This document shows, in pieces, positions 1-64,000 of a DNA stretch of 64,000 nt. Within the stretch, counting starts at the first letter, position 1; the number at the start of each line of letters is the position of its first letter. The notes beneath the pieces were generated by a model. The model searched no databases. It had not been told where the DNA came from and saw only the letters and a program-made list of their open reading frames with translations. Position numbers and translations under genes: made by a program. This DNA comes from Lytechinus pictus (lineage: Eukaryota). Where the stretch lies: contig NC_087259.1 of the NCBI RefSeq assembly GCF_037042905.1, positions 15,872,001 through 15,936,000 of the forward strand, in the 5' to 3' direction.

Positions 1-1252
1 GAAAGGATACAAGAGAGAAAAAGATAATCCATCAAGCATGTTTATAGATTGTGATCCTGATCTTGAAAAATTCCAACCATCATTTTGTGATGCAGGTTCA
101 CAACAAAGACTATTCACACAAACACAAGAAATGTGTGGGGAAAAAAAGAATATCAAACTAGCATAACACTGAAATTTTCATCAAAATTAGACATATTAAA
201 GTAAGTTTTTAAAAGTATTGCTAAATTTCAGAAAGCATTGCGCATCCTGATCAATATAAAAGTGAGTGAACTAATGACATGACCCACTTTTTCTTTTTTT
301 GAAATATTTCAATTTATCCTCATCATAATATGAAACAAAATTTTATTTCTCCATGAACAAGTGGCATTGCTGTCATTGAAACATATTGTGATTTGATGAG
401 TACAGTAGTCGCATATCGTCATATCTGTAAAAATATGAAATATTATGATTAAGACAGTAGATTAAAAAAGAAATAGAGAGCAAGACTGGAAGTGACATCA
501 TTGACTCCCATCTGCATATCACTGTATCATGCATATAAATGTTTTGTGAAAATAAGCAAAAAATGAGATGCCCTTACTTTCTTTTGCATGGAGGGGGGGG
601 GGTGCTGCCCCCAAGATCCCCTCCCCCTCCCCATTAATTTTTTGTAGGACAGTGCTGTTTGATAATGATAATAAGAGTGTACAAGTTGTATCTATGTCAT
701 GACTATGCACAAAAGGGCAAGATTCTCATGAAGAATCCACTTCAAGAAGACGGGGCTAAAGAAGATTCTAGAATTATATACTATATTCTCATTAGAGCTG
801 GGTATGAAAATGCAACTTCATTGTCTTTTGAATTATAAAACAAATTTTGCCAACTGTTTGTGCTCCCTTATCTCTGTATATATTGCAAGTCATTTGTTCT
901 ACATTGTACATTTTATTTCAGTTTTAGGACTTTGGACCAATAGTATTGGATTTTGTTTTGTGTACATCAGCCTAGAATGTGTTGACAAGCATGTGTCAGC
1001 AGATATATTTGGTTGGGACTACAGTTGCTGAAATCTCAGAACAGATGCCTATTTAAGCTCTCTCTATTTTGGTGGAACCCATTGATAAATTCAGCCCGTT
1101 TGTCCTGATAGGACATTTTACCCCCTGAAGAAGTTTGGAACAAAACTTGAATGCTTGACTCAAGATCTCCATTCGTTTGAGCTCGACACTTTTCTTAAGG
1201 GTTCTCCTGATATGTATTTTCTCTGTTTGTATTTCCATGTCGCAGACTCACA

Positions 1253-2098
1253 ATGAATGAAGATAAGCCACCATTCCATGTGGCCCTGGCTGCTGGGGCG
1301 ATAGCTGGTGTTTCTGTTGATGCCTCCCTCTTCCCAATAGACACGGTCAAGACGCGTCTTCAAAGCTCGCAAGGTTTCTGGAAAACAGGAGGATTTCGTG
1401 GGATTTACTCTGGTATCTTGCCTGCCTTTTTAGGCTCGGCCCCGTCCGCTGCTCTGTTCTTTACCACATATGAGGCAGCAAAGTCTGTCGGAAACACGTA
1501 CGTCCCGCAGCAGTATGATCCCTTGGTGCACATGGCTGCAGCGTCGTGCGGTGAGGTCATGGCGTGTTTGATACGAGTACCGACCGAGGTTGTCAAGCAG
1601 CGAGCTCAGGCCACTCGGCAGGCGAGTAGCGGTATCTTCCTCCACGCACTCCAGGGTGAGGGCGTGACTGGACTCTACAGGGGCTACTTTGTGACCTTGC
1701 TACGGGAGATCCCCTTCTCCCTAATCCAGTTCCCCTTGTGGGAGTTTACCAAGAAGATGTGGGGCGGTCATCGAGGCCGTCCTGTGGATGCCTGGCAGTC
1801 GGCTGTCTGTGGATCCTTTGCGGGAGGCATTGCCGCTGCTGTGACCACTCCTCTCGATGTCATGAAGACCAGGATCATGCTTGCATCGAAAGACAGCAGT
1901 CTAGGTAGAGGAGTGGTTTCTAAGGTTGCTGGGAACATCATCAGGGAGAAAGGATTAAGAGGACTCTTTGCTGGTGTTGTACCTCGGGTTATGTGGATTT
2001 CAATAGGAGGGTTTGTGTTCCTAGGCATGTATGAAAAGTCAAAGATAGTAATGCTACGCTTTCAAAATCAAAGACTAACATATTCTAAAGAAACATAA
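1253..2098 (+). CDS. SLC25A26: S-adenosylmethionine mitochondrial carrier (SLC25A26/SAMC-like), copy 1, intronless CDS, 281 aa
   Basis: Three carrier signature motifs (PIDTVKTRLQ, PTEVVKQRAQ, PLDVMKTRIM) plus SAMC-typical segments GFWKTGGFRGIYSG, REIPFSLIQFPLWE and WQSAVCG. Pyrimidine tract and CAG acceptor at 1243-1245, 7 nt before the ATG. AATAAA at 2379-2384. Confidence 0.95.
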   Translation: MNEDKPPFHVALAAGAIAGVSVDASLFPIDTVKTRLQSSQGFWKTGGFRGIYSGILPAFLGSAPSAALFFTTYEAAKSVGNTYVPQQYDPLVHMAAASCGEVMACLIRVPTEVVKQRAQATRQASSGIFLHALQGEGVTGLYRGYFVTLLREIPFSLIQFPLWEFTKKMWGGHRGRPVDAWQSAVCGSFAGGIAAAVTTPLDVMKTRIMLASKDSSLGRGVVSKVAGNIIREKGLRGLFAGVVPRVMWISIGGFVFLGMYEKSKIVMLRFQNQRLTYSKET

Positions 2099-4344
2099 GA
2101 CAGATCTGTGGTTTCAGCAACTATAAGTTTACCAGCAAGCAATGGAGCATTGAATGCTTACAATGTATGTCATTACAGAAGTCTACAACACAAATTTTTG
2201 TTTGGATCTATACTTCAGAATTGGGGTGAAGTTTGACATACAGTTTGCATATGTTTCTGTTGAATATAACTTCTGAAGGTTTCTATGGTGAAGATGAAGA
2301 GTGTACTGGTTTCACAGTACACCATGTATTTTGTCGTGGGCATATGTTGTTCCTGGAACCACTACACTTCTTCTGTTGAATAAAGCGCCAAAATGTCTTG
2401 TGAACACAATCCCCTGTCTGTGTCTATATAGTTAAGAAAAGCATTATCAGAATAGTTTATAAACAAAAGTGTATCACACCAGTTACCATTTGCTCCTTAC
2501 AAATTGCCTGACATAGCAATACTCCATTCATAGAAACACAACTGTCAACATCAAGCCTCCTTGATTACCATCAGTGTGTGTGAAAAGCAAATAACTCATA
2601 TCTCATTTCCTGGAGCAAATATGTGATGGCATGTATTTGATGATCTGTACCAGTCTCTTGATCAGTCATATGTCTGCAGAAAAGTGCAGGCACAGACCCG
2701 GATGGAAACTTTGACTAACAAGTGAGTCTTCACACAAGACTAGCACATACAGTACACATATACATGTAAAACTTGTTGCAAAGTAATTGTAGACTGCACA
2801 TTCAGACCCCTTAACTGGAGTGAAGGGTTTGCACAGCAGACTGTTCAATTATGGTGCTTTCAAGTCAGAGACCTGTACAGTATGTATAAATTCCAAAGGA
2901 AATCATGAAACATCTGTTTAGTGTTTACTACTCCGAGTGCAGGATATTACTTCTTCATGTTTTAAAACATGTACATGTATCTGTCATATTTCAGTTATAG
3001 CCTCTGACGTACCATACTTGTAAATACAAACTTGTTTATTTGGTTTGAAAAATACTCAAACCTGTGTTCTACTGCATAATTTAGACATCATTTCATTTGG
3101 TCCTTCCGCATACTTTGTCTAATAAGCCATCTAATAGTGTTTTTTTTGGTCTGAATACCCTATAAAGGTCATTCCGCGAACATTCCTGTGGTAAAATGAG
3201 TCATAAATTTTCATTTTCAAACAACAAAATTCAATTTTAAACATTGAAACATTGATTTTACATTATCAAAGTTACTGACAGTCATGTGAATAATTGATTC
3301 ATGCCCATCATCACATGGCTGTGATTTGGAGCCAATGTTGCCCTAAATCTTACCCGAGTGATTGCATTTAATTAGAAAAAAAGTTTTTTTTCTTGTTTTT
3401 CTGAATCTCAAGATAAATGCATATACATGTATACTGTAGTTCGAAATCAGGTTCTTCGTGACACACATTGTGATTTTCACTGTTTTCTTTGTCTCTTTGC
3501 AAATCAAATTCAATGATTTAAACTTAGCTGTACATGACAATAGTCACTGACTATTTGCTTCATGTCCAAAAGTTACAGACTAATCATGAAGTTTGCATCT
3601 TGTTTCAGTGAGAGAATTCAAATTAAAAAGGTTGATTGTTTAATTGTTCAGTTCTTTGTAGATTGACAAAAAATATCCTTCCACTTTCAGGTGTATTCAG
3701 TTACAAAAGCAAATGTTTAATAACTGGATTTGACAAAGCTTTAAGAGATACATGTAACCGGGGGGGGGGGGGGGGGGCTATTTCTAAGTTACAAATGACT
3801 TTCCTCACGACTGGTGACCCTTTCTTTTGGTTACAAGTGATATATACACCAAATTTGCAATGGTGTTGATTTAGCTCCCAAGAAGGGATCAGTTCGTAAA
3901 GTCATTTGTAAATTCTATATCTAACTTTTGAGAAGAATTGACATAGAACCATCATCAGTAGTTATGATTTACATGTATTTTGTATTGTATAGAAATATGT
4001 ACATGTAAGATGTACTGTATTTTTACATTCTGCAATGAAAATTATCATCATGTTTTTATGATTCTTTATGTTGAAATTTTATCAAGTCCTGAAGTGACAA
4101 AGATAAAAATTACATGCATATTTACTTACCGGTATAAGCTTTTTTGATAACATGTTTCATGTACTGAATGTATGAAATTAAATATATTGAAATTTATTAT
4201 TTCTTGTGTATTTTTAGTATTACTTTTTTGTTATGTCTTGTACTTTGCTTTGAATTTGTACAAAATATTACAAACATTGTATGTGTACGTGATGATGCGT
4301 TTTAGGTTATATTATTAGGAGATTTGCCGATATATACAACACCA

Positions 4345-4504
4345 GGGCCCTGTTGCATGAACGTTGCCCATTATGGTAACTTTGCTATCAAATGGTAACT
4401 TGCATGGAATCCTTGATTTTGATTGGCTGTTGATCAGCATTACCATGGTAGTTACCATTGGATGGCAAAGTGACCATAATAGTAAATTTTATGCAACAGG
4501 TCCC
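4345..4504. mobile_element. Palindromic MITE (Harbinger-like termini)
   Basis: gggccctgttgcat...atgcaacaggtccc with internal inverted symmetry. A related element lies at about 17503-17630. Confidence 0.75.
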
Positions 4505-5310
4505 CAGGTGTAGTAAAATAGGTATCCGATAGGCAGGAATTCTATTCCTGGTCTCAAACTATGAATTGAAAATTTTAACTTTAAAACATGATTCTACTTG
4601 CAGTCTTATGTTTTAGTACATATTCTTGTTTAGTTTAATAACGGACAGAACTTATATGTATTGGTTCTGAGGAAGGCTATGTCTACACATTTAATCGTTG
4701 AAAAAACATGAGCCCCTATCAGATTTGCACGAAAGTGTTATAAGTAATAGCCAAATGGTTATTTGAAAAAATAATCTCTGAATGAAATGTTGAATCTTCA
4801 TGCATGTCTTCAAGGTAAAGTAAAAACAAGAAAATCCATATTTAGCATCCTGCCAGTATCCTTCATGTGGCCACCTATTTTATTCTTGAAATGAAAAACA
4901 CAAACACCTTTTTTGTAGATGGAGTTTATCTAGGCTGGTTTGTTATGCTACTTGTAAATAATTAATACTAAATAGAAAGGAAATAATGCAGTCTGTTTTA
5001 CCCCATAACCCTATGTTGCTTCTACTTTAGCAATCCATGTTTTTGTCTCTGAAATTTGAGTTTGTATGGACCATCTATAAAAAAAAAAAATTGTGAGGAC
5101 TTGTTATCTTGAAAACTAATGAGATCCAGGGAATCTATATTTTCACTTCTTACGTCAAAGCTGTAACCATTAAAAATATGATTAAAAATATGTGTAGGGG
5201 GTCATTTGAAATGAAGGATAATATTCAATAATTTTTTTTTCAAATTTAAATGGCAGGGTGCTAAACATGAGTTTTTCTCCTTACTTTGCCTCAGATATGA
5301 CTTGTGAAGA

Positions 5311-6126
5311 ATGAGTGATCAGATCCCATCTCTTCCTGCGGCACTCCTGGCTGGAGGCGTGACAGGAACTATCGTAGACTGTACCCTCCATCCCATCGAC
5401 ACCATCAAGACCAGACTACAGACTCCTGGTGGCTTGTGGAAAGCCGGTGGGTTCCGAGGTTCTTTTGCCGGTATCTTGCCTGTTCTCATAGTAACGGCTC
5501 CCAACTCGGCCATATTCTTTGGCATCTATGAGACTGCAAAGGCACTTGGTGAGGCGCATCTCCCGGCGAAGTACGAGCCATGGATCATGATGTCCGGTGC
5601 AACGGCCGGGGAAGTGTCTTCGTTGTTGATACGGGTTCCTGCGGAAGTCGTCAAACAACGTGCCCAGGCCACTAGGAAACCCAGCCTCGCCATCCTACGG
5701 GATGTTCTGAAGCAAGACGGATACCGTGGCCTTTACAGAGGATTTGCCAGTACGGTCTTAAGGGACGCACCGTATGCCTTTGTTCAGTATCCGCTGTGGG
5801 AACTCTGCAAGAGGATCTGGGCAAGGCAGCAGGGATATCCGGTGACGGTGTGGCAGTCGGGTATATGTGGTGCTATAGCGGGTGGTTTTGCGGGAATCGT
5901 CACGACACCCTGCGATGTGGTGAAGACAAGAGTCATGCTTGGAGGACAAGGATCCAAGGGCCACATTGATCGTATTCCAGATATCCTCAGAACTCTACTC
6001 AAGGAGAAGGGGGTTAGGGGATTGTTCTATGGAGTTGTGCCTCGTTTCATTTGGATGTCTGTTGGTGGGGCATACTTCCTTGGGCTCTATGAAAAGTGCA
6101 AAATTCAATTTATGCAGTATGTGTAA
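5311..6126 (+). CDS. SAM mitochondrial carrier-like paralog, copy 2, intronless CDS, 271 aa
   Basis: Aligns to copy 1 without gaps (hand count about 133/271 identical). Motifs PIDTIKTRLQ, PAEVVKQRAQ, PCDVVKTRVM. Acceptor tttttctccttactttgcctcAG ends at 5294. Candidate AATAAA at 7718-7723. Confidence 0.92.
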   Translation: MSDQIPSLPAALLAGGVTGTIVDCTLHPIDTIKTRLQTPGGLWKAGGFRGSFAGILPVLIVTAPNSAIFFGIYETAKALGEAHLPAKYEPWIMMSGATAGEVSSLLIRVPAEVVKQRAQATRKPSLAILRDVLKQDGYRGLYRGFASTVLRDAPYAFVQYPLWELCKRIWARQQGYPVTVWQSGICGAIAGGFAGIVTTPCDVVKTRVMLGGQGSKGHIDRIPDILRTLLKEKGVRGLFYGVVPRFIWMSVGGAYFLGLYEKCKIQFMQYV

Positions 6127-6696
6127 ATTACTAAGTAATCAGCTAAAAAAAGATAATAATTATTCCTCTACCCCAAAAAGATGCCGGTGATGTACATGTA
6201 TATTTTCTGTGTTGTCTGTTCATCCAGATAGTAAAAACTTGTTTTGTGGATGAAACAGCGATGCACTTCAAGAGGATCTCATTGCTAACTTCACATCCTG
6301 CAGCTGTGTCCTTGTGAAATGTTGACTTTCTCAAGGAACTTAATGGCATGGTACTATTTGATATAATTCTGTTCCCTGTAAAAAAAAAATTGTAACTGAA
6401 TAATAATAATATCGGCATATTTACCCAGGGTAGCCACTTCAGTTCCGAAAACTGTTCTCCCAGCGGGCCCTGCTATCATTATACAATTGATTGAATATAC
6501 AATTGATTGTAATTTGAAGTCTATGGAAAATCACATTAAAAAAAATTACAATCGCTTTGAAATATTGTATATTTTTTACACTGGGCCTTGGGCCCTTTGT
6601 AGAATGTGTTGCATTTTAAATGCAGTAAAAAAATTAATAATCATACCCAATTCACTAATGCATGCTCCTGATTGGTCAGAAATCAAGTTGCGTTTG

Positions 6697-7634
6697 TTGT
6701 CTCACCTGCATAGCAGAGTGAGACTATAGGCGCCGCTTTTCCGACGGCGACGGCGGCGGCGGCGTCAACACCAAATCTTAACCTGAGGTTAAGTTTTTGA
6801 AATGACAGCATAACTTAGAAAGTATATGGACCTAGTTCATGAAACTTGGCCATAAGGTTAATCAAGTATTACTGAACATCCTGCCTGAGTTTCATGTCAC
6901 ATGACCAAGGTCAAAGGTCATTTAGGGTCAATGAACTTAGACCATGTTGGGGGAATCAACATCAAAATCTTAACCTAAGGTTAAGTTTTTGAAATGTCAT
7001 CATAACTTAGAAAATATATGGACCTAGTTCATGAAACTTATACATAAGGTTAATCAAGTATCACTGAACATCCTGCATGAGTTTCACGTCACATGACCAA
7101 GGTCAAAGGTCATTTAGGGTCAATGAACTTTGGCCGAATTGGGGGTATCTGTTGAATTACCATCATAACTTTGAAAGTTTATGGATCTGATTCATGAAAC
7201 TTGGACATAATAGTAATCAAGTATTACTGAACATCCTGCGCAAGTTTCAGGTCACATGATCAAGGTCAAAGGTCATTTAGGGTCAATGAACTTTGGCCAA
7301 ATTGGGGTATTTGTTGAATTACAGCCATAAATTTGAAAGTGTGTTGGTCTAGTTCATAAAACTTGGACATAAGAGTAATCAAGTATCACTGAACATCCTG
7401 TGCGAGTTTCAGGTCACATGATCAAGGTCAAAGAACTTTGGCCACGTTGGGGGTATTTGTTGAATTGCCATCATATCTCTATAAGTGTATTGGTCTAGTT
7501 CATAAAACGTGGAAATACGAGTAACCAAGTATCACTGAACATCTTGTGCGAGTTATAGTAGTTTTCAAAATCAGCACTGCTGCTATATTGAATCGCGTGA
7601 TGCAGGTGAGACGGCCAGAGGCATTCCACTTGTT
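6697..7634 (+). mobile_element. Helentron/HINE-like non-autonomous element with internal tandem repeats
   Basis: Subterminal inverted repeat gtctcacctgcat (6699-6711) / atgcaggtgagac (7600-7612), a (ggc)n microsatellite near the 5' end, about 5 internal units of about 150-190 bp (gaaacttgg...caaggtcaaaggtca), and an end running into a T-run. A degenerate 3' copy lies at about 19290-19730. Confidence 0.65.
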
Positions 7635-8863
7635 TTTTATTACAACTCTTTTTGAAGCATGCTCTTGATCTGGCAGGGGTAGAGGCTTAATACAGTAATG
7701 ATGTGCATATATTTGAGAATAAATTTATTTCAATTGATAAATTGTGACTTATATTTTAATCAACTTATCATGCAATGGATGTAATTCTGTACTTTTACAT
7801 TCCAGAACGACACACAATCTTGATACACGATAAATTTAGTTCATTGAAAAAAAAAAGTTTAATAGGCAGCTTTATATTTGTGACATAACATCTGTGATAA
7901 GTACTGTCAAAAGCTTGAATAGTGTACTTGTACTTCTGTTCTTGTAGTTCGTAAAGTTTCATTGAAATAATACATGTAATTTTAAATAACATTTTAAAAA
8001 AAGATTGCATATTCCCGAAATATTTTGGATTAGTTTATGAAAATCCCGGATGAAAGTCAGTTTCCTTGAATTTTTCTCACTGCTCCCTTTTTTATTACCT
8101 TTTGTTAGAAATTGAGGTCTCATTAAATCCTGATATATTGAACCCATGTATGACACTGAATGATGTTTTTATGTGTGCTTTTGATATGGTCATGCATTGT
8201 TATCACCTTCGGTATTATTAACTGAACATTCACATCCTAGATAGTAGATACATTACTTCCACATATTTTACTGTAGAACTTTTCTTCATTTCCCAGGGGA
8301 ACTTTTTGAAGATGAAAACTAAGGCTGAGGCACAACCCCTTTTATTTGATATAGTTGTTGTATTGCAATTAGGCATATTCAGACCGACTTAATCACCAGA
8401 GTACATGTTCAATTATGAGAACTTTTTCAGGCTAAAAAATACCTGTTAATTATTCCTGCATTCACACCGCCCAGAAACATACCCTTCGGGATACATGTAA
8501 GTTCCTGAAGTAACAAGCATGTGCGATATGGTCTGATAAGCAAGCAAGGCGCAAGATTCAAAATCACTTGCTCAGCAGCCACCCACGGCGCCCGCACCCA
8601 ACTACACGCTAGGCTAAAAGTTCCCTTTATTTGCTTTCACACTGCCAAAATACCTGCGACCCTAGAACCCCCCCCCCCCCCCCCCCCCCGGTGAAAGTTC
8701 TCTTAATTTTCACAAGTACCTACATGTACTATTTAGTGGTTATTTTCTTTCAGGGAGATTACGCGTAATTTGCTTTCACACTGCCAAAATACCTGGAACT
8801 GACGAACTTCAAGGTGGTCTGAAACCACCTTATGTGATATTCAGATATCCCCAAATTTCCTTT

Positions 8864-11800
8864 TAGTCAGATCCAGATTTAAGAAAAGTAGACTACCTTA
8901 GGCAAATCGTGTTAATGCTGAATTGAGAATTGTTTTAGCATAATTTGAGGGCGCCGAGTCCAAATTTGCTGTTTGCCAACCTTGATTTTGATGTTAAAAT
9001 CCTCAAATTGGCAAAAACAATATGGCCGCCATTCTACACCCTTTTTTGCTCTATTCTGACCCCCAAAACTTGTAACTAAAATGTTTGTCAACGATTTTTT
9101 TTACTATTTGATCTCAGAAATAACATTCTAAAAATCCACCAAAATCTGGATCCGGGAAAGTGGTTATTTTCAAGATGGCACCTAAGATGGCCGCCATCAA
9201 CTGAAAATTAAAATAACCGGCACTTTATCTACCCTAGACACCTTTTTCGGTGCATACATGTATTCAATGGTGTAGGAGGTAAAAGGAATGAGTGAATATA
9301 GGCACTCCAGTGTACCTGAAAATCCAAGATTGCGTAAAAATGGCTGCCATGGCCTAAAAATTCACAATTCATCTATTACATATTTTAGTGTCTTTTATTT
9401 GGGTTTTATTTATTGGTGATGTTCAAGGGTCAAGAAGTAGACCGACATAAGTTACAAGGACAGTCAATGGTCCACTATGTCCAAAAATCCAAGATGGCTT
9501 TCAAAATTGGAGTCTAAAATAGCTGTTGTTATCTGAAAAACCCTAAAACCCGACATAGTTTGTTTAATATCTGCCTTGGGGATATGATGATGGTGTCTAA
9601 CCCGTGGTTTAATGGGTCAAGAAATACGTTGGGACAAGTAACAAAGACAGTCTATGGTCTTCCATGTCCAAAAATCCAAGATGGTTTGCAAAAATGGAGT
9701 ATAAAATGTCTGTCGTTAATTACAAACCGACATAGTTTGTTTAAAAACCGACTGGAGAATATGATTTTTTAGTATAACGCGTGTTTAAAGGGTCAAGTAC
9801 TAGATTGGGACAAGTTACAAGGACATTTAGTGAATCCAGTAAGTCCAAAAATCCATAATGGCTTCCAAAAATGGTCAAATACATGTAAGCCGTTCTTACC
9901 GAAAAACTGACATAGTTTATTTAATATCAGCCTGGGGTATATGATTTTGGTGTTTAACCCATGGTTTAAAGGGTCAAGTAATAAATAAGGACAAGTTACA
10001 AGGACAGTCAGAGGTCCAGCATGTCCAAGAATCCAAAAAGGCTTCCAAAATTGGAGTCTAAAATGGCTATTGTTACCTAAAAACTGACATAGTTTGTTTA
10101 ATATCCGCCTGGGTTATATGATAATGTTGTCTATTCCTTGGTTTAAATGGTCAAGTCATACATAAGGATAAGTTACAAGAGCAATCAGTGGTCCTGTATG
10201 TCTAAAAATCCAAGATGGCTTTCAATTAAGGAGTGTAAAATAGCTGCTGATACTTAAAAATTGACATAATCTATATAGAATCCATCTGGGAGATATGATT
10301 TTGGTGTCTACACTATGGTTTCAAGAGTTAAATAATACTTTTGGATTAGTTAGAATGGTATGAAGCTGTCCATTTTGCCGATTATTTAAAGATGGCTTTC
10401 AAAATGAGTCTAAAAAGACTTCCATCACCTAAACATAGTCATAATTAGGTGAACAAAATCTACACTACTGTGGTTTGAAGGCTAAAATAATAAATCGGGA
10501 CAAATAAAAAGGATGGTCAGTTTTTCTTTTCGTCGTAAAAAGTCCAAAGTGACTTCTAAAATTGCGTAAAAATGACTGATGTGCCATAATCGTGAAACCA
10601 TGGGATAGTCCTAAGCACAAAATGACGTGTCTTGAAATACTTATCAGTGATTTATGGAACTTTTTAGGTGAAAGTGTACCTTAGTTTTTAAAGTTTGTTT
10701 TTCGGATGTTTACTTATTGTTGCACCACTATCTAATTATGTCACTAACTCTTGTAAAACATAATTTTCATGAGTCTTAAAAACAGAGACACCAAAATAGT
10801 GGCAATAGATGGGATATGAAGTATTGTCGTTTTTGTATCAATGGTGGCCAATTCGAATGTAATTTTTGGAGCGTTCTTCAATTTCTTTACAAAATGGACA
10901 ACGGTGTATCAATGTAATTCGTCTTAACCTATATTATCTGACCCTTGAAATCATGAGAAAGACACAAAAATGTTTCTAGGTAAATAGTATATGCACTTTG
11001 CAGCAAAATTTTTAAGAAATAACTATTTTTTAAGCCATCATCATTTTTTTTTGCCAAACTGCACCACTGATAAACCTTTACATTTTTCCGATGTAATTTT
11101 TCCCCTTTGGAACCATAATTTTTTATGTTTTATTTCATTCTCGGTAGACCCCAAAGTTATTTCTACCAGGTGGACATTATATGAATTTGGACCATTTCAA
11201 AGATACAACGTCCAGACGTCCATTATAGACGTCATTTTGGAAGGTCATCTTGGATTCTCTGACAAACTCACTGACTATCTTGTAAACATGTCCTGATTCA
11301 TTATTTGCCTTGAAAGCATTTTGATGATTTAGATTTTGATTTTGAGGATTTACTTTATTTTTGGAGTTGATGGTACAACGACTGCCGTTTTGGATGCTAT
11401 GTTGGATTTCCATGTAACCTTGACGACCTTTTGTAACTATAACCTGTCTAAATAGACTTTGTTTAATCCTAACATGCCTAAGTTTCATAAAATAGACATC
11501 TACTGTATACCCTAAAAGTAATTACATTTAAAAAACTCAGTTAATATTTGATGTTGACTTTACCGTCGCCATGGTCATCGCCGCCGTCGGAAAAGTGACG
11601 TCCATGTCTTGCTTCTGCTATGCAGGCAATGAAAAAATGGCGGACATGTTAAAGATATCACAATGTGAATATGCCAGCATCGCCCCAAAATGATTAATCA
11701 TTTGGCCATATTATTTATCAATCAGCAGCTGTGAATCATGGCAGCCATCTTGTAAATAAAGATGGCTGACGAATCAATCGGACACATTATGTTTGCAACC

Positions 11801-12064
11801 CTGGGTATCAAATATAACGCATATATCCCAATTTCTGAAATACAATCACCCATAAAAATCGTTTAATATGGGAAACTGCATTAAAAATGCCGCCATTTTG
11901 TTTTTTGCCGATTTGAGGATAAAAACGTCGGAATCAAGTTTGGCAAACAGCATTTTTGGATTCAGCACCCCTGAATTACCTTAAAACAATTGATAAATCA
12001 GCATTAACACAAAATGCCTAAAGCACTTTTTCTGAGCACATTTTTTAAAATCTGGACCTGACTA
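8864..12064. mobile_element. 3.2-kb non-autonomous DNA transposon with long imperfect TIRs and an internal ~180-bp tandem array
   Basis: Ends tagtcagatccagattt / aaatctggacctgacta, with complementarity continuing for about 170 bp. The unit motif ccaaaaatccaagatggct recurs near 9481, 9668, 9845, 10025, 10203 and 10385. No transposase ORF. Confidence 0.8.
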
Positions 12065-12471
12065 TTTGGGAAATCAAGGCCATTTGAAGGCTGTGATTAC
12101 TTTGTTGAATGGTCTTGGTGCCCCTCTTATATTGGTCTTGGAGATTTGTTGCACTTTTTTATTATCTTTTCTCATCTTTGCTGCAACATAAATATGTGCC
12201 CTAGTTTATAGAAAAATGGCCTTGCCCTCCTTGCCCTATAAATATTGAATTTTAAGACCTTGATTTGACAGGTCCATGATTTGACAATAGGTATTGATCA
12301 AGGATGAAAATTCAGGTCTCCCCAATCTGTGTGTGCAGCAAAATGACAGTCATATTATTTTATCATATGTTACTTGGTCTTTAATTGTAAAATTTGTCAT
12401 CTTGCTTTTCTGTATGAGTTCAGTGTTTTCAAAGTGTAATGCAGTTGTTTTATATTACGATATATTTAAAA

Positions 12472-12826
12472 GAGCCGTGGTGTAGTGGTTCTGACTTTGT
12501 AAACAGAGGGTCGTGTGCTCGAATCCCACCGCGGTCTAGCGTTCTTTGGCAAGGTATAAATCCACACTTTGCCACTCTCGACCCAGGTGCTAAATGGGTA
12601 CCCGGTACATGTAGGATGTGAAAGTCATTGTAGGTTGTCCAGTACTGTGTGCACTCCAACGGTAACTGACTGTAATACTCCCCAGGGAGTGGAGGATGTG
12701 CACACATTGTGTGCGGGAATGACTGATTGAATCCGATAACTGGGTAATAATCTGTAAAGCGCTTAGACATGTCGTTCGGATCGATGTATTAAGCGCTATA
12801 TAAAAGCGGAATATTATTGATATTAT
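12472..12826 (+). mobile_element. tRNA-derived SINE
   Basis: A-box (gtggtgtagtgg) and B-box-like (gctcgaatccc) head, conserved-core-like ctctcgacccaggtgctaaatgggtacc, and an L2-like 3' tail gcgctatataaaagcg followed by (att)-type repeats. Confidence 0.8.
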
Positions 12827-13001
12827 TCACTGGACACTCAGGTGTCTGAATTAAGGAAAGGTAGACAGTTACAGGATTATTTATGAAAAGTGCTCTGTAA
12901 TGCCTAGTCTACCTTCTTGGCCCACCTTATACTGTGCTGCATGTACAAGTACGGTAGTGGGATAAAGATTGTCAGTACCACATTCATACTTTGTGCAATC
13001 T

Positions 13002-13266
13002 GGGCCTCGTCTTTCAAATAGTTACGATTGATCCAATCAATCGTAACTATGAAAATCCATCAGTTTCATAATTTTTTCTGCAGGAAATTTGCACAATGTC
13101 CTTTGTAAACACAGGAGAAACACACCAAATTGTCAAAAAGTTAATGAATTTATGAATATACATCATATCTAGTAAAATTTTTGAACAAACATGCATTTTC
13201 TATGTTGACTCTGTTGGCTTTCCATAGTTGTGGTTAATTGGATCAATCGCAAGTCTGACAGGCCCC
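13002..13266 (+). mobile_element. ~275-bp MITE family A, copy 1 (degenerate)
   Basis: Homologous to the copies at 15488, 20677 and 28106; GG(G)CCC-type termini. Confidence 0.8.
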
Positions 13267-13379
13267 AGGTATACAACCTGCAGACAGTGTATGTAGATTA
13301 TCTGATAGCCATTATCTTAAAAAATTGCAAGGACTAGTATCAGATAATGAAGTTTTATTATTGTTGACTATTAGCACAA

Positions 13380-13890
13380 GTGGATGTTAAACCAAACGGC
13401 AAATAGACCAAAGTTATACACGTAGCCGTCATGGTGTTAAATGATCGAGCATAACCCAAACTGGTAGTAGACCATGCGCTGATTGGACCAAATTGACAGT
13501 AGACCAAATATTTTATTGGTAATGTAATGTACATGCAGTAATGGACAATATGTGAGTTAGACCAAAGGCTATTAGACTAAATGGTGATTGTACATGTACA
13601 TGTACCTAAGGGCAACGTGACCAACACCTGTATAGGTGTTATAACCAGGATGAAGTAGTAGACCAAGTGATAATTGGGCCAATTGGCTATTCTACTACAT
13701 TGAGAGTAAATCAATGGATTTAGTGATTGGGCTTTGTATCAATAGATGATCTGTGGAATAGGTATAGGCCAAGTGGTAATTGGACCCCAAAATTGGACCA
13801 AATTGCAATATGACCAACAGAGCTCTATATTAAGGGAGTACACTGTATGATCTGGAAGTAGACCAACTGAAAGTAGACCAAGTGGCTCTG
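13380..13890. repeat. Degenerate short-period repeat (agtagaccaa / ttggaccaa)
   Basis: The motif recurs many times. Related tracts lie at 19020-19210 and, inverted, at 18420-18600. Confidence 0.6.
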
Positions 13891-15487
13891 ATTATTTATC
13901 ATGAGGCCATCTACTTTTGCATAGATTTATAACATGGTGATTGCCTTTTGAACTTCATATTAATTTCTCACCGTATAATAGTCAAGTATACAAAAGGAAA
14001 TTACACATGGAACCCAAATGTGTACAGGCAAATGTTGGATGTGCATGTACATTTACTCGAATAGCAAAATTTTAACATTTTTCCCCATCTCATGCTTTTT
14101 TATCATGATGATAGTGGACCCTCGAAAACAATTGTATTCCCTTCCAGTATACATGAGATCTTTCAAGCAATGTATATTTTTATTGAGTTAATTAATGCTC
14201 AATTAATTAATTTTACTACAGAATAAAGCAGGCATTAGTAGAAATCTATAATAGACATGTTGTTACCTCAGCCACTCAAATTGCATTATCATTCGCTTGT
14301 AATCAGTATTTTGTAATGGACCATTTATTCTGATTATAGCTTATATTCAATACAAAAATATGCAGTATTAAGTAACAGAATGTTGTGGTAAATGTACAAC
14401 TTTTTGTATGTTTATCAGCTTGAAAATGGGTTATTATGAACAATAAAAAAAGTTGCTCCCCCCCTTTTTCAAAATACCATCATGTTTTAATGATATGAGT
14501 CATGAGGTCATAATGAAATATTCTGGGAGAGATGTCTTTGAAATCATTGATCAATTCCCGCGTGCAGATCAAATTAATCTGCCTACTCTTAATATACAAG
14601 AGGATGCATAAATGATGAAAATTGCATTTTTAAAATTCAAAAGGGTCATTTTGTAGAATTTGTCATTCCAAATGTTGACTACTCTCTTTTTGGTTTATGA
14701 TTGAAAAGCACAATTATTTATGCCCCCCCCTCTACTGGCACATGCTGAAGTTCAATGAGCTTAATTGAAAAAAATGCCAATCTTTCCTAAATTTTGAAAT
14801 TGTAAAATCCATTCAGTTGATCGCAGAAAAATGAAACTGGATATTTTTATCAGTAATCCTTTGTATCTAAAAAATTGTAGGGACATTAGACTGAGGTTAT
14901 AACACTTTCAAGGTTGATTCAAGCACACCTAATGCTTTGATTTTTGTAGTGTTATTTATTCCTTATCAAGGAATCCCTGTAACTCTGTGACAATTCTGCT
15001 GTTAATGCATTTTAATTCGGTGGATTAACAATATAGTGCACCTTCTATCGGTTGCAGCGAACAGGCAAAATTTCTAACTTTGGGGTCGACATCGCGCACA
15101 GGCCCATGCAGCGCGTAGTGCTAGTACTTCAAAAATGAAAACCAAATGCCACCATTTCACCAAAAACAGTCTAAATTTTGCAAAGAAATATGCGGGCAAT
15201 TTCTCTCCTACCTCCTGGACCCAAGTAAATAGCATGTCCGGTCGAGCCGCGTCGGCCAGCGCTGAATAATCGCATGTATGCATTCACTTTAGTACTAGCG
15301 TGCTTAACAGATAGATGGCGCACCGTATTGTGAAGCCACCAAATTCATGCATAAATGTAATGGATTACTGAGACTTTTACACAGAAGGTAGTCAGGGGGG
15401 GTGAGTGAGTCAGGCCTTTGACATTATAGCAACTGATCATGAGGCGGATTTATACAATTAATTGCATTGCTCATTGTATATGACCTC

Positions 15488-15765
15488 GGTCCCGTCTTAC
15501 AAAGAGTTACGATTGATCCGATCAATCTCAAGTACATGTATATAGGGAAATCCAGCGATGTCATAATTTTTTTCGTTAGGAAATTTGCTCAATGTCCTTT
15601 AAAAACAAATAAAGCACACTGAATTGTCAAGAAATCAGTAAATGTATGACTATACATCAAATCTTGAATGTATTTGAAGGAACATGTATTTTAGATGTTG
15701 ACGTTGCTGGCTATCCATAGTTGTGATTGATTGGATCAGTTATAACTCTTTGTAAGACGGGGCCC
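15488..15765 (+). mobile_element. MITE family A, copy 2
   Basis: TIR ccgtcttacaaagagtta / taactctttgtaagacgg. Confidence 0.88.
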
Positions 15766-17204
15766 AGTTGTAAAATCTGTGTCATGATCACTTGCTTACT
15801 AAGAGTTTTATGTTACATGGCACACAGGAACACAATACTACCACAATATATTCTAATCATTTTATTAAAAGCCTACATGTACGTGTAATGGTATTTTTGA
15901 AAGAGGGTTGACCTTTTATTGAACATTGTTTGAATTTTCATTCAATGTAGTATACATGTAAGTGGCAAAGTGGATGATATATATATTTTTCTATTGTGTA
16001 CACAATCATAGCAATCAGTGGAATGTGTGTGGAATATTGATATGGATATTAAACCACAGAGAAGACAGTGATGTTGTTTTTGTAATTACTGTTTTTTATT
16101 TGACCTATAAGTGTAGGACATATGCATGTATTGAGATACATGTACCATTGATATTGTTCAATTTTCTGGTGTAACGTAACGTTTGTAAATGACATACCTT
16201 TGTTCATGTAAGCTATTGGTAAAATGATCATACTAACATGTCATGGCATACATAAGGTTCTGTTGGAATGAGAGAGAGAGAAAGAGACAGACAGACAGAG
16301 GGCAATCAGGGAGAGAGAGGGGGAGAGAGAGAGAGGTTTGCGTGGAAGAGGGGGTAGATAAATACAAATTCAAAATAAAGAGCTATAAGAAAAAGAAAGG
16401 AAAAGAAAGAAGGAAAGGAAATAAACATTTGAAAGTTATGAATAATATGAGAAAAAAGGAACGGCAAGAAAGATAAGGAAACAGAGGAAGGATGATAGAA
16501 AGAGAAAGAAAAGAAAGTGGTGATGGATAAGAGAAAGAAAGGAAAATGGAAGTATTGTAGAAATGTAACAAAAATGAAGGAAAGATGGATATAAAAGAAA
16601 GAAAAAACTAATTACAAGAAAGAATGAATGAAGGAAAGAGTAATTTGTTTTAACTCCCTTTTCATGGTGATTGATTTTGCCACAAGTTGAACATATCTCA
16701 TGAACTCTATCATGAGTGTAAGGAGGGGCAATAATCATTAACCCCTGCCCCTAAAAAAAGCAAATTAAATTTTGAAACCATATTCTACCCTCCTTCATTA
16801 AAATATTTAATCTGAAGCTGCCATTTTCCAAGATTTATCAGATATTAAGATTTTTATGGGGATTCAGTTGATTTGTCTCGCATTAGAAAATTCCTATTGC
16901 TGATTACGATAACAAATAAGCAAATTTCAACATATCACAAAGGGATTACAAGTAGAGGCAATACTAGTAGTCGACCCTTATTAAAAAATATCCTAGATTA
17001 AAAGTTGTATTTGAACCCCTACCTTGCCCAACCCCACCCCATCAAAAAAGAAAATAGGTAAATAAAATTTATTTGAAAAATATGCATGTAACCAAACACT
17101 AGTTAAACTCAACTTACAGTGAACTTGCTGAATATATTTCTGTTACAAAAACACATGATGAATACGTTTATGTTTATTCATCTCTCTCTTTTCTTGCTTT
17201 CTAG

Positions 17205-20200
17205 TCGGTGACACTCCACACAGATGTTGGTGATATCAAGATAGAGTTATTTTGTGATCAGGTGCCCAGGACTTGTGAGAACTTCTTAGCATTGTGTGCC
17301 AGCGATTACTACAATGACTGTCTCTTTCACAGGTAAAGTACCTACATGTATGTGGTCTTGATATTTCAGAAAAGTTAAAGCAGTCCTTCGCTTTTCAATT
17401 TTAAAGCCTGTTTTTTAGTTTTGGGAAATGCCCAAGTAGTTCATGTGCCATTATTCCAGTCAATTATGATATATATGAATGGGCATGCCCTAAAACAGAT
17501 CTGGCGCCTGTTGCATAAAAGAAAAACTCTGGCAATTTTTTTTTGCCAGAGTTTTTCAATGTGATATTGTCAATGGCACAATTTTGTCTGCCAGAGTTTT
17601 TTATGGCACAAGTTTTATGCAACAGGACCCTGATAAGGAGGTTTGATCTAATAAAATGTTTTACTGCTTAAATTTTGCGATATTACATTAATATAGTACA
17701 TGAATATTTTGAATGGGTGCCATTCAAAAGGCTTGTACCGCCGAGTTGGATGAAATCACGTTGAGTTATGGGGAGCCCACCCTTTTGTCCAAAGCCTCCC
17801 CCCCACCCTGGTTTTGCCGAAATGGTGCATTGGGACTTTCTTTGAGATTCTGATTAGTTTCACTGAGTTTTTTTATTTATATAATTTTCAATCAGCCATT
17901 TCAAATAGGGCATCATCCGGATCAGCTTATTACCACTTGGTCTACAGCCAGTTAGTCTAATAGACAGTTGGTCTAACATTTTTATTATTATTATCATCAT
18001 TACTATTATCATTATTATTATTGGATTATTATAGTAGATTGCGAGACAAATGAATACCCTCTAGCGATTATTTCAGTCCGCAATAATGAACCTATTTAGT
18101 ATTATTATTATTATTGTTATTAGTAAAAGTATTATTATTAAAATTGTTGTCATTGTTGTTGTTATGAGGAAAATCAATTTTCAATGTCATACCATCCTCT
18201 CACTATTGCAAAAGCGAACTAACCAAGCAAGAGCACTTCTTGATATTTATTTTGCTATTTGTTTTCTTTTTTTCCTAGAAATATCCCAGGCTTCATGGTA
18301 CAGACGGGGGATCCAACAGGAACCGGGAAGGGTGGAACTAGCTGCTGGGGAAAGAAACTTGAAGATGAACTCGATGATGATTTAAAGGTTAGTTAATAGC
18401 CAAACAGAGAACATTTGCTATATTGCCACTTGGTCATCACCCACTTAGTCTACTTTCAGTTCGGTCCCATCCTACGTGGTCTAATCTCAGTTCCTCTACA
18501 ACCAATTTGTCTACTAGAACCATTTGGTGTAATTGCCATTTCGCCCATTTACCATTTTGTCTAATTCCAGTATTACTATATCTATCTTATCCCCAATCAC
18601 CTGGTATACCACAAATTTGTGTATATAGGCTGTGATGCACCAGCCCGAGTTTGCTCAATCTCGAGATTTTAGCACGATCAGCCCTCTTCGCGATTAATCT
18701 CGAGATTCAAGAAACCTCATCTCCTCCAGTGCAAGAAGAGCAATTCGTGCTCAAGCGAGGCATCGATGCATTGTAGTCTGACGCCGTGAATGACTAATCT
18801 CGAATGTGTCTGCACCTGTGAATTAGCGGGATAATTTGAAAATAGCACGCTATTTTGAAAATAATCCCAAGTTGACTGAGGATTGCAATCTTGAGATTAA
18901 TCCAGCGAACTATCACGATGATCGCATCTCCATTACAAATAATCTCGAGACTGGATAATTTGCCGGATCAGAAATAGCGTGATTATTTGAAAACTCGGGC
19001 TGGTGCAGACTGCCCTCATGATTAGCTAAACTGTTTATGAACCAAATTTTCATTTGACAAAGTGAAAAATAATAAGCAGACTAAGTGGACTTTAGATCAT
19101 TTGGGCTTTAGACATGATGATAATTAGACTATAAGTAGGCATTAGGCCAAGTGTAGTGTCAACTGAACAGCAATTGGACCAAACTGGTAGTAGACCAAAT
19201 GGGTCTTGCCCATGTGGTATCTTGATTGTTGATCCTTTTTTGACAATTTCTTCCAAAATTTAATCTGTACCAGAATTTATTTTTTATAAAATTTGGATGT
19301 AAAGATCAATCAACAGATTTCAGAAATTTAATAGATGAGTATAATTTCAGGTTACTTGGTGAAGGTCAAAGGTCATTTCAGATCAATTAACTCTGATTGA
19401 TATTTTATTCATTATTTAAAAAATACTTAAGAATGCTAAAATAATAAAAAACATTAACACATTTTAAAAATACTAATCAAACTACATGAAACACAGATAT
19501 TGTTATTTGATATGAAAAATAGTATAACATGAATAACAAGTTTGTCAGTCAAGGTACATGTGAAAGGTCATTGAGGTCCACAAACTTAGTATTTCATTAT
19601 CCAAATTAATGTTATTTTCTCCCCTTTCTTAAGAATAAAAATAATCATCTTAGTTGCTGTCAAAGTCAGCACTGCTGCTATGTTGAATCGTGTAATGCAG
19701 ACGAGCCTGCCAGAGGCATTCCATTTGTTTCGTATTATCTCTCCATGTCCCTTGTTTTTATCTTCCAGCATAATATACGAGGGGTCGTTTCCATGGCGAA
19801 CAATGGACCAAATACCATTGGGTCACAATTCTTCATCACGTATGGAAAGCAGCCTCATCTTGACATGAAATACACCATCATTGGAAAGTAAGAAAATCTT
19901 AATGATTTTTTGTTTTCATTTTATTTATTTGTTTTTCATAATCTTTTGGACCTGATATTACCATCGTGATATGATGAATAGTGACCCATATTTATCAAAT
20001 TACAAAGCATTATTGAAATAAATATAGAAGAAAGTTCTCACAACTAATTAAATATGAAGTAATACATTTCTTAAATCTATCCATGTTGGGAGCTAAAGGA
20101 AATATGTTGGGAGAAGTGAGTTTGAATCATCTACAGTATGTCGATTGATGCAGATATATTTTCAATATTTCTTATATGTATATACTTGAATGTTAAATAT

Positions 20201-20448
20201 CTAATTTATACACTAATAATATGAACATTTCCAATATTCATCACCCCTTTCATTTTGTATCAAAGTCATATGTAATAATGATTCTTTCTTTGTCTGTAAT
20301 TCTATTTGTCAGAGTCATTGATGGCCTAGAGACTTTGGACGAGCTTGAGAAGTTAAGAATCAACGAGAAAAACTTCCGACCTCTGACAGAATGTAGAATC
20401 AAGACAGTTACAATACATGCCAACCCCATAGCTGATGACGCATCATAG
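17205..20448 (+). CDS. PPIL3: Peptidyl-prolyl cis-trans isomerase-like 3 (cyclophilin); start-codon exon not found in window
   Basis: GT-AG exons 17205-17332, 18279-18387, 19769-19887 and 20313-20448 join in phase: (M)[62 protein letters not shown]...[54 protein letters not shown]...[11 protein letters not shown] (164 aa with Met), matching PPIL3. AATAAA at 20539-20544. Confidence 0.95.
18628..19014. mobile_element. MITE in PPIL3 intron
   Basis: TIR tgcaccagcccgagttt / aaactcgggctggtgca; internal atctcgagat repeats. Confidence 0.8.
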
Positions 20449-20676
20449 CGTCTCATTCTGTAGTGTTAAAAGGTATTGGATAAAATTCTTAAGGTATTAT
20501 TTTGAAAAAGTGTTGTATTTACTGTTGTTCATATAAAAAATAAAAAAAAACAACAACCAGGAAGATTCAGACACTTTAAAGATATCTGTGACTGAATAAT
20601 CATCATTTTATTAATCCCCTGTGGAGACTAATGTACCACATATCAGTATATGGAATAAAGTTTGGATGGTGTTTCA

Positions 20677-38203: not shown

Positions 38204-38357
38204 NNNNNNNNNNNNNNNNNNNNNNNNNNNNNNNNNNNNNNNNNNNNNNNNNNNNNNNNNNNNNNNNNNNNNNNNNNNNNNNNNNNNNNNNNNNNNNNNN
38301 NNNNNNNNNNNNNNNNNNNNNNNNNNNNNNNNNNNNNNNNNNNNNNNNNNNNNNNNN
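38204..38357. other. Assembly gap (154 N) inside a (CCA)n/(TAC)n microsatellite
   Basis: Run of N flanked by accaccacc and tactactac. Confidence 0.99.
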
Positions 38358-62352: not shown

Positions 62353-64000
62353 GTAAGTCTTAAAGTAAAAGTCTGTTTTAATTTATCTTTTGTCAGTCTT
62401 GGAGTTTGTTCTTTATGTATAATGTTTTGCCCGTTTTACTTTTTGGTTCGTAATATGTATTCATTTTATATTTTTGTTTTTTTTATGTTGTTTTTACATC
62501 AATCTATTGTAAATATTGTGATTCTTAATGATTTATTATTAAAAACATAGATCTGTAAAAGAAAGTCTGTTTAATAAATATTGGCATCCTGAAGATTAAT
62601 TTCATGTCAAAGCGTCAGTTTGTTTGATTTTAAACAATGTATGTAGGCCTGTCTATTGTATTGTCAAGCATATAACATAATGGCAAATTGTTTGATATCA
62701 TTGGTTGTTTAAAGATTTGAAAGTAGTAGGTTTTGTCACTGATTTCATGAAAAAGTCTGTAAACTCAAGGGCATTTGTAACTAGATCATTGTAGATCTGG
62801 ATCTGGTACAGTTTTGTGAAATGAAATCTAATCTAAAAAACCAATCATGTTGAAGATCGCCTGCACAGATAAGCACATGTGAGACAGTGTGGGTTTAAAG
62901 GTTTTTTTCAGTTATGGACGAGGGCCGTGCATGCACTCGTTAAAGGGTATCAAAAACACAGATTAAAAAAAAAGGGTGGTTTTGAAAGACTGGTCAATGG
63001 TCAATCGCAGGGTCAAACGTATTTAGGGTATGTTTTTTTTTCCAAAGCTTTTTTTTTTCTAAGACTAGCCAAACGTTTTTAGGGTATGTTTCTTCCCCCA
63101 AGCTTTTTCCCTGGGGTCATATTCAGGCGACAACTTGTTTAGCGGCCAAAATGTGGAAATAAAGCCTGCGAAAAAACTTGTTTAGGGGGTTATTTTGCAC
63201 ATGGAGAAAAACAAGTTTAGGGGGTGTTTGGAAATAATTTGTGTACAACAATACATTTGACTACCCCCCCCCCCCCGGTAACCCCCCCACATTTGATGGA
63301 ATTCTGTGCTTTTATTACACATTTTTTTTTCCTGAGTCGTTTGCCACATATTTTTTCATTATGCATACTAACACTTGGGTGGCCATTTTATTGGTTTTTG
63401 TTCGAACTAATTTTGAGATCATTACCACAACCGGCATTTATGTATCTTTGATTTTCATGTCAAAGTGATATGTTTGGTTAGATTTTTAAATGCATGTGTT
63501 TAAAAACACCTGTCCATGTGGTCAAACATATTACATAAAGGCAAAATGTTACGGTTGTTTTAATGACAATGATTATTAGAACTCTGCCCTTATTTCGATT
63601 TTTTTTATAATGCTCTTGATTTATTTGGGTAAAAATTGAATAGGGTCTTTTAGTGTTAAGTCTACTTAATCGTGTCCTTGTATGATTGTTCTTATTACTT
63701 TTCTTTTAAATTTAATTTATATTCAAGAATCAGGATGACTCTTGTAATGTGGGTCATAATAAGGATAACAGTTGGGTGGAAGTATACATGTACACAAAAT
63801 TATAGGTCAAGTGTTGCTGAGCATCAGTGATAAGAGAGACCGCATACAATGATATCTTTACTTGTAATTGGTCTATATGATAATGCTTGTTTGTACAGAC
63901 ACTGATAGGTTCTTCTCTGTACAATATTGTGAAGAGCCTCAATATATAAACATTGCATTAAAGCGATAGACAGAATTTGTGTGCACAACACAGTGTAATC

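Follow-up and report, generated by a model that had tools for sequence, protein, structure and literature searches.

Exons 2 to 5 of the gene for the cyclophilin PPIL3 lie in a 64,000-nt window of the genome of the sea urchin Lytechinus pictus (contig NC_087259.1, positions 15,872,001 to 15,936,000 of the forward strand). They are preceded there, on the same strand, by two intact, intronless open reading frames (ORFs) for mitochondrial carriers resembling SLC25A26, the S-adenosylmethionine (SAM) carrier (SAMC), referred to here as carrier 1 (c1) and carrier 2 (c2). The three coding regions probably make up a compound locus: c1, c2 and PPIL3 would all be served by a single promoter and a single first exon. 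A first-pass annotation of the window had proposed an exon common to the carriers and PPIL3, and this proposal is supported. For c1 and c2 the support comes from the fork structure of probable RNA contigs and for PPIL3 from isoform numbering in six related echinoderms, which makes the last link an indirect one.

Splice acceptors of the carrier genes and their use in RNA

The c1 coding sequence (CDS; window positions 1253–2098) specifies 281 aa and the c2 CDS (5311–6126) 271 aa; these and all other features described for the window are on the plus strand. A 3′ splice site is found a few nucleotides before each ATG. That of c1 (1205–1245) includes a branch-like CTGAT at 1207–1211, a pyrimidine tract and an AG at 1244–1245, leaving a 5′ leader of 7 nt (1246–1252) in the predicted terminal exon. 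The c2 site (5260–5294) consists of a pyrimidine tract with an AG at 5293–5294 and leaves a leader of 16 nt (5295–5310), which contains a small internal upstream ORF (uORF) whose TGA overlaps the carrier ATG. The AGs at 7 and 16 nt behind pyrimidine tracts, like the position of both carriers 5′ of PPIL3 exon 2, are as the first-pass annotation had described them.

In strongylocentrotid contigs the c1 acceptor region is kept and the c2 acceptor region is nearly identical, both being better conserved than their flanks, and the 16-nt leader of c2 is identical in related-urchin contigs L019–L028. These Logan contigs (L010 and L018–L028) were considered as spliced 5′ ends and set aside, as they follow the genomic sequence without a break across the acceptors and are probably DNA. 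The strongylocentrotid contigs L010 and L018 also share with the window non-coding blocks at 925–1010, 250–330 nt 5′ of the c1 acceptor, which have no RNA cover and may be intronic regulatory elements.

RNA data of the same species, comprising three stranded raw runs (X19–X21) and one contig run (X1), were mapped on 600–6400. The kind of run X1 is a tool's guess, and its exon-like depth profile is consistent with RNA; it is regarded as a probable RNA run. Stranded reads and contigs gave zero depth at 600–1181 and, except for repeats read on both strands, near-zero depth at 3898–5255. Plus-strand coverage sets in within the bins that hold 1246 (1–3x) and 5295 (1.4–9x), and the stranded RNA revealed no expressed plus-strand exon in the 650 nt 5′ of c1. 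This profile accords with the earlier remark that neither carrier has an evident private first exon or promoter in the window.

X1 contig 1 (1249 nt) aligns from letter 29 onward to 1245–2465, and its first 28 letters have no match in the stretch. X1 contig 8 (1048 nt) aligns to 5294–6313, and here too 28 letters beyond 5294 are unmatched. Both acceptors (1245/1246 and 5294/5295) are used. Each overlap between neighbouring contigs of X1 is exactly 30 letters long (2436–2465, 2609–2638, 2890–2919 and 3579–3608), which indicates a k=31 graph with contigs ending at forks. The first letters of the exons are AC in c1 and AT in c2, and the overhang of 28 letters followed by G and A makes up a 30-mer. 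The fork therefore falls at the second exon letter, and we infer that c1 and c2 follow one upstream exon that ends in G. Two private upstream exons would not be expected to yield matching 28-letter overhangs.

Candidate PPIL3 exon 1 upstream of the window

PPIL3 exon 2 (17205–17332; ag|TCGGTG ... CACAG|gtaaag) begins in phase 0 and includes codons 2–44. It follows a 3′ splice site (17170–17204) with a long pyrimidine tract and a final tag, and its product matches Pro_isomerase (PF00160) beginning at profile position 2, in agreement with the earlier reading that coding in the window begins at codon 2. Positions 1–17204 are assigned to intron 1, given the codon-2 start of exon 2, the lack of a usable ATG donor in this segment and the start of the CDS 5′ of the carrier in relatives.

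A scan for ATG|GT donors was extended to −30000 and covered 60 sites up to 17204 (~47 kb). The donor matrix was rough, with approximate frequencies, so that the scores are only a guide. The top donor is ATG|GTGAGT at window position −8256 (L004:1744–1746), with a score of 6.4 against 4.2 for the runner-up. Sites in 1–17204 score at most 2.5, as expected from the previous statement that no strong ATG donor is present there, and the known exon-1 donors of echinoderm PPIL3 genes score 4.0–5.7 on the same matrix. The upstream exon ending in ATG|GT that the first-pass annotation had called for thus has a candidate.

The candidate site lies in unique sequence and has 13 letters around the ATG in common with the end of Apostichopus exon 1. 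A search with six sampled words of the candidate exon found 2–3 of them, and two probable RNA runs contained two of the six. PPIL3 exon 1 is accordingly placed, as a candidate, ~8.26 kb 5′ of the window, giving an intron 1 of ~25.5 kb that would start 8.25 kb 5′ of the window, and we infer that this exon is also the upstream exon of c1 and c2 in L. pictus.

No Pfam match was obtained for ORFs upstream of the window. NIF3L1, the head-to-head neighbour of human PPIL3, was tried as an anchor for exon 1 and rejected, as it is located on another chromosome in this genome. An 80-nt repeat (L004:1460–1540) lies ~200 nt 5′ of the candidate exon; its copies, ~90–94% identical, occur on many chromosomes, and one is inside the window near 63001–63086.

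Nested arrangement in other echinoderms

The nesting is conserved in relatives, which the first-pass annotation had suggested checking. Public annotated contigs of Diadema, Patiria, Anneissia and Apostichopus all include an intronless carrier within the annotated PPIL3 range and on the same strand. In Diadema (L011), PPIL3 is annotated over the full 20.8 kb of the locus, with c1 at 10001–10816 and the c2 orthologue at 18546–19358. PPIL3 extends over 9278–15129 in Patiria (L012; carrier CDS 10001–10849), over 7759–14593 in Anneissia (L016; carrier CDS 10001–10837) and from 6289 in Apostichopus (L017; carrier CDS 10001–10819). In these last three species the PPIL3 ATG is annotated 5′ of the carrier, and exon 1 ends in ATG|GTAAGA (Patiria), ATG|GTAAGT (Anneissia) and ATG|GTGAGA (Apostichopus). 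The distance from the PPIL3 donor to the carrier acceptor is 717 nt in Patiria. An AG is found 2–20 nt before the carrier ATG in the relatives; that of Apostichopus is without a clear pyrimidine tract and is tentative. A partial duplicate of the C-terminal part of the carrier (L017:10900–11049) lies just 3′ of the Apostichopus carrier ORF.

The most telling observation in relatives is that, in six echinoderms, the carrier or carriers and PPIL3 bear NCBI isoform numbers, apparently as products of one gene. The congener L. variegatus has c1 as X1, c2 as X2 (consecutive accessions) and PPIL3 as X3, and S. purpuratus likewise has carriers X1 and X2 and PPIL3 X3. Patiria, Acanthaster and Anneissia have a carrier X1 and PPIL3 X2, as does Amphiura, where the accessions are consecutive (carrier XP_072014525.1, PPIL3 XP_072014526.1). 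The numbers are ordered by protein length and run across differently named proteins. Hemichordate PPIL3s carry no isoform label. The NCBI pipeline merges models that share splice structure into one gene. If this description of the pipeline is right, the carriers are linked to PPIL3 by independent models with RNA support in six species. The PPIL3/carrier structure is implicit in RefSeq models.

Two longer protein models were also noted, of 554 aa (P0127, S. purpuratus) and 551 aa (P0137, Diadema antillarum). P0127 has c1 and c2 head to tail, with four linking residues translated from the c2 leader between them; the length of P0137 suggests the same fusion. Such ~550-aa models are probably annotation artefacts. 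The locus is relevant to annotation, older models having fused both carriers into one protein. The accession of the 551-aa Diadema model is consecutive with that of a 188-aa PPIL3, a hint that this contig may carry the locus twice.

Proposed expression of the locus and alternative explanations

In the proposed scheme, PPIL3 exon 1 would end in the start codon ATG, and intron 1 would contain c1 and c2 in tandem, each having a separate 3′ splice site and a separate 3′ end. One primary transcript would then have three mutually exclusive outcomes: splicing of exon 1 to the c1 terminal exon followed by polyadenylation, splicing of exon 1 to the c2 terminal exon followed by polyadenylation, or splicing of exon 1 to PPIL3 exons 2–5.

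Several points weigh against this scheme. If the shared exon ends in ATG, the carrier mRNAs have to bear a start codon upstream of their own. In no read or contig were letters seen that join exon 1 to 1246, 5295 or 17205, and the expression evidence for the candidate exon is weak, amounting to the 2–3 of six words given above. The status of X1 as RNA depends on the guessed kind of the run, and reading the isoform numbers as common splice sites depends on NCBI grouping models by splice structure. Lastly, the Diadema annotation has no isoform labels and gives PPIL3 and the carrier as separate genes.

Some of these points would be met if c1 and c2 were nested in PPIL3 and did not use its exon 1, having instead a non-coding first exon to themselves, with a separate promoter or another donor, located 3′ of the PPIL3 ATG exon and 5′ of window position 600. 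Such an exon would spare the carrier mRNAs an upstream ATG, would suit the separate annotation in Diadema and could supply the 28-nt overhang, the letters of which were not seen. However, isoform numbering joins the carriers and PPIL3 in six echinoderms including L. variegatus, the PPIL3 donor and the carrier acceptor are only 717 nt apart in Patiria, and no plus-strand exon is expressed within 650 nt 5′ of c1. This explanation is considered improbable.

It is very improbable that each carrier is an ordinary one-exon gene, transcribed independently from a promoter immediately 5′ of it, with an AG that precedes the ATG by chance. The related-urchin Logan contigs, which are probably DNA, run colinear with the genome across the AG. 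The RNA data already contradict this explanation: immediately 5′ of both acceptors the depth is zero, the X1 contigs break exactly at the AGs with 28 foreign letters each, and the acceptor regions are conserved beyond their flanks.

If the locus were an operon whose transcript is resolved by trans-splicing of a spliced leader, and the PPIL3 ATG came from that leader, this would account for three same-strand genes each starting at an acceptor and for the equal overhangs of both carrier contigs. It can be practically dismissed, as Patiria, Anneissia and Apostichopus each have a genomic exon ending in ATG|GT upstream in cis, and a leader carried by many genes would place the fork later and give an overhang of <28 letters. 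We know of no trans-splicing in echinoderms.

Predicted upstream reading frames of the carrier mRNAs

With PPIL3 exon 1 as the shared first exon, its ATG would open a uORF of 2–5 codons in the carrier mRNAs, ending within ~10 nt of the carrier ATG, and the carriers would be translated by leaky scanning or reinitiation. If the exon ends in ATG, the predicted uORF of Lytechinus c1 is MTHNE*, stopping 8 nt inside the carrier ORF, and that of c2 is MI*, followed by the internal uORF of the leader. In Patiria and Anneissia, in c1 of Diadema and of the strongylocentrotids and, tentatively, in Apostichopus, the TGA of the predicted uORF would overlap the carrier AUG (AUGA). The spacer lengths in these five cases of stop-start overlap are 2, 5, 8, 5/20 and 5, all of which are 2 mod 3; the spacers of Lytechinus c1 (n=7) and of c2 (n=16, or 12 in Diadema) fall outside the pattern. 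The pattern is no more than suggestive and may be inherited (n=5 in most species) rather than selected. A further, rather doubtful possibility is that every carrier mRNA starts with the PPIL3 AUG and a uORF of 2–8 codons and that the carrier is made by termination-reinitiation at the stop-start overlap. The same AUG would then act either as the PPIL3 initiator or as a gate for mitochondrial SAM import.

Carrier proteins

Both ORFs contain three Mito_carr (PF00153) repeats (E ~1e-53 for c1 and c2). The PX[DE]XX[KR] signatures are PIDTVK, PTEVVK and PLDVMK in c1 and PIDTIK, PAEVVK and PCDVVK in c2. The proteins are 49% identical to each other. An exact-protein look-up of c1 and c2 among public contigs gave no match; c1 is 99% identical to a Lytechinus pictus database protein and shares 55–64% identity with named SAMCs from several phyla outside the echinoids. 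When the entire 812-Mb genome was searched in six frames, c1 and c2 were the only SAMC-like loci.

Carrier 1 is a conserved SLC25A26/SAMC orthologue that retains 87 of the 88 invariant SAMC columns. Carrier 2 is a diverged, echinoid-specific SAMC paralogue; 12 of the 88 columns are substituted in all four c2 orthologues, and judging from these substitutions its substrate or kinetics may be altered. The ratio of nonsynonymous to synonymous substitution rates, measured against the strongylocentrotid contigs, is 0.11 for c1 and 0.06 for c2, values indicative of purifying selection on both genes.

Origin of the nested carriers

Echinoderm carrier CDSs are single ORFs that have lost every ancestral CDS intron. 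In the outgroups Ptychodera (hemichordate), Branchiostoma (amphioxus) and Haliotis (abalone), carrier matches fall in 3–6 pieces over 3–21 kb, and PPIL3 does not surround them. The suspected retroposed origin of the carrier CDSs fits, because the outgroups have a multi-exon carrier gene elsewhere. In the tree, the echinoderm carriers form one clade, within which c1 and c2 are sister groups that split before the divergence of Diadema and the camarodonts, with a long stem branch for c2. On this tree, the split between c1 and c2 is specific to echinoids.

The simplest history would have four steps. In the stem lineage of echinoderms, PPIL3 intron 1 would have received a retroposed SAMC mRNA in sense orientation, and the retrocopy would have acquired a 3′ splice site. 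The multi-exon parent gene would then have been lost (retrogene replacement), and a tandem duplication of the retrocopy in echinoids would have been followed by divergence of c2. We take the echinoderm-wide arrangement to be ~500 million years old, by our own estimate, an age at which a poly(A) remnant and target-site duplications would be expected to have worn away.

Comparison with known systems

The closest known arrangements differ from the one proposed here in several respects. In the cholinergic locus, the single-exon ORF of VAChT (SLC18A3) lies in intron 1 of ChAT on the same strand, with shared 5′ exons, alternative splicing and long conservation (PMC3053374). The present locus likewise has one-exon transporter ORFs within the first intron of a host gene, in the same orientation. 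However, the cholinergic products act in one pathway, whereas PPIL3 and the carriers are functionally unrelated. VAChT also has its own promoters. Further differences are that the shared exon would here carry the start codon of the host, and that the nested gene resembles a retrogene which took the place of its parent and, in echinoids, was duplicated.

Retrocopies in host introns can be expressed by splicing from upstream host exons, as is Taf9 in Ak6, and 13 human and 14 mouse cases have been described (PMC4772013). The carriers resemble Taf9 in that a retrocopy in a host intron would use its host's upstream exons. They differ in that the arrangement is echinoderm-wide, the nested genes are the only SAM-carrier genes of the genome, and the tandem duplicate leads to a three-way choice. 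In retrogene replacement, as in the case of amphioxus SYCP1, the multi-exon parent is lost and its role passes to a single-exon retrogene (PMC5803294). In echinoderms, by contrast, the replacement lies within another gene, whose first exon it apparently needs. As in alternative last exons with intronic polyadenylation, an intronic terminal exon would compete with downstream splicing, but the usual products are truncated host isoforms and here they would be complete, unrelated proteins. A literature search found no article linking PPIL3 with SLC25A26 in echinoderms.

Import of SAM is required for mitochondrial methylation and cofactor synthesis. For some half a billion years, on the dating given above, the only SAM-carrier genes of echinoderms appear to have lacked their own promoter, and they seem to rely instead on a first exon that belongs to a housekeeping gene for an unrelated protein, a cyclophilin. 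The locus would represent an unusually old and clean natural case that combines retrogene replacement, host-gene capture and a three-way choice of terminal exon, and sea urchin embryos permit such a locus to be tested directly.

Remaining exons, 3′ ends and repeats

PPIL3 exons 3 (18279–18387) and 4 (19769–19887) are coding throughout the given spans, and the coding part of the last exon (20313–20448) ends with the stop codon TAG at 20446–20448, followed by an AATAAA/ATTAAA-type signal at 20539. The protein assembled from the four window exons and a supplied M has 164 aa, the length of all echinoderm PPIL3 proteins compared, and is ~81–83% identical to vertebrate PPIL3 across 120 residues.

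An AATAAA had been reported downstream of each carrier; this is the case for c1 (at 2379), whereas the first poly(A)-like signal of c2 is ATTAAA at 6535. The c1 3′ untranslated region (UTR) extends over 2099–3761, as judged from RNA depth. Coverage by the raw runs X19–X21 drops near 2400, by the AATAAA, whereas in X1 the contigs reach 3761 at a depth equal to that of the c1 CDS, which suggests alternative polyadenylation with a long, sample-dependent 3′ UTR. The c2 3′ UTR (6127–6400) is covered by RNA up to the end of the stretch mapped.

A short palindromic repeat resembling a miniature inverted-repeat transposable element occupies 4339–4511 and has thousands of candidate genome copies (88–93% identical). 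It includes two ATG|GTAAC sites, at 4373 and 4392, and has an RNA depth of 100–200x on both strands in the raw runs. A run of 154 N is present at 38204–38357. Another interspersed repeat, with >3000 candidate copies of ~69% identity, is located at 141–583.

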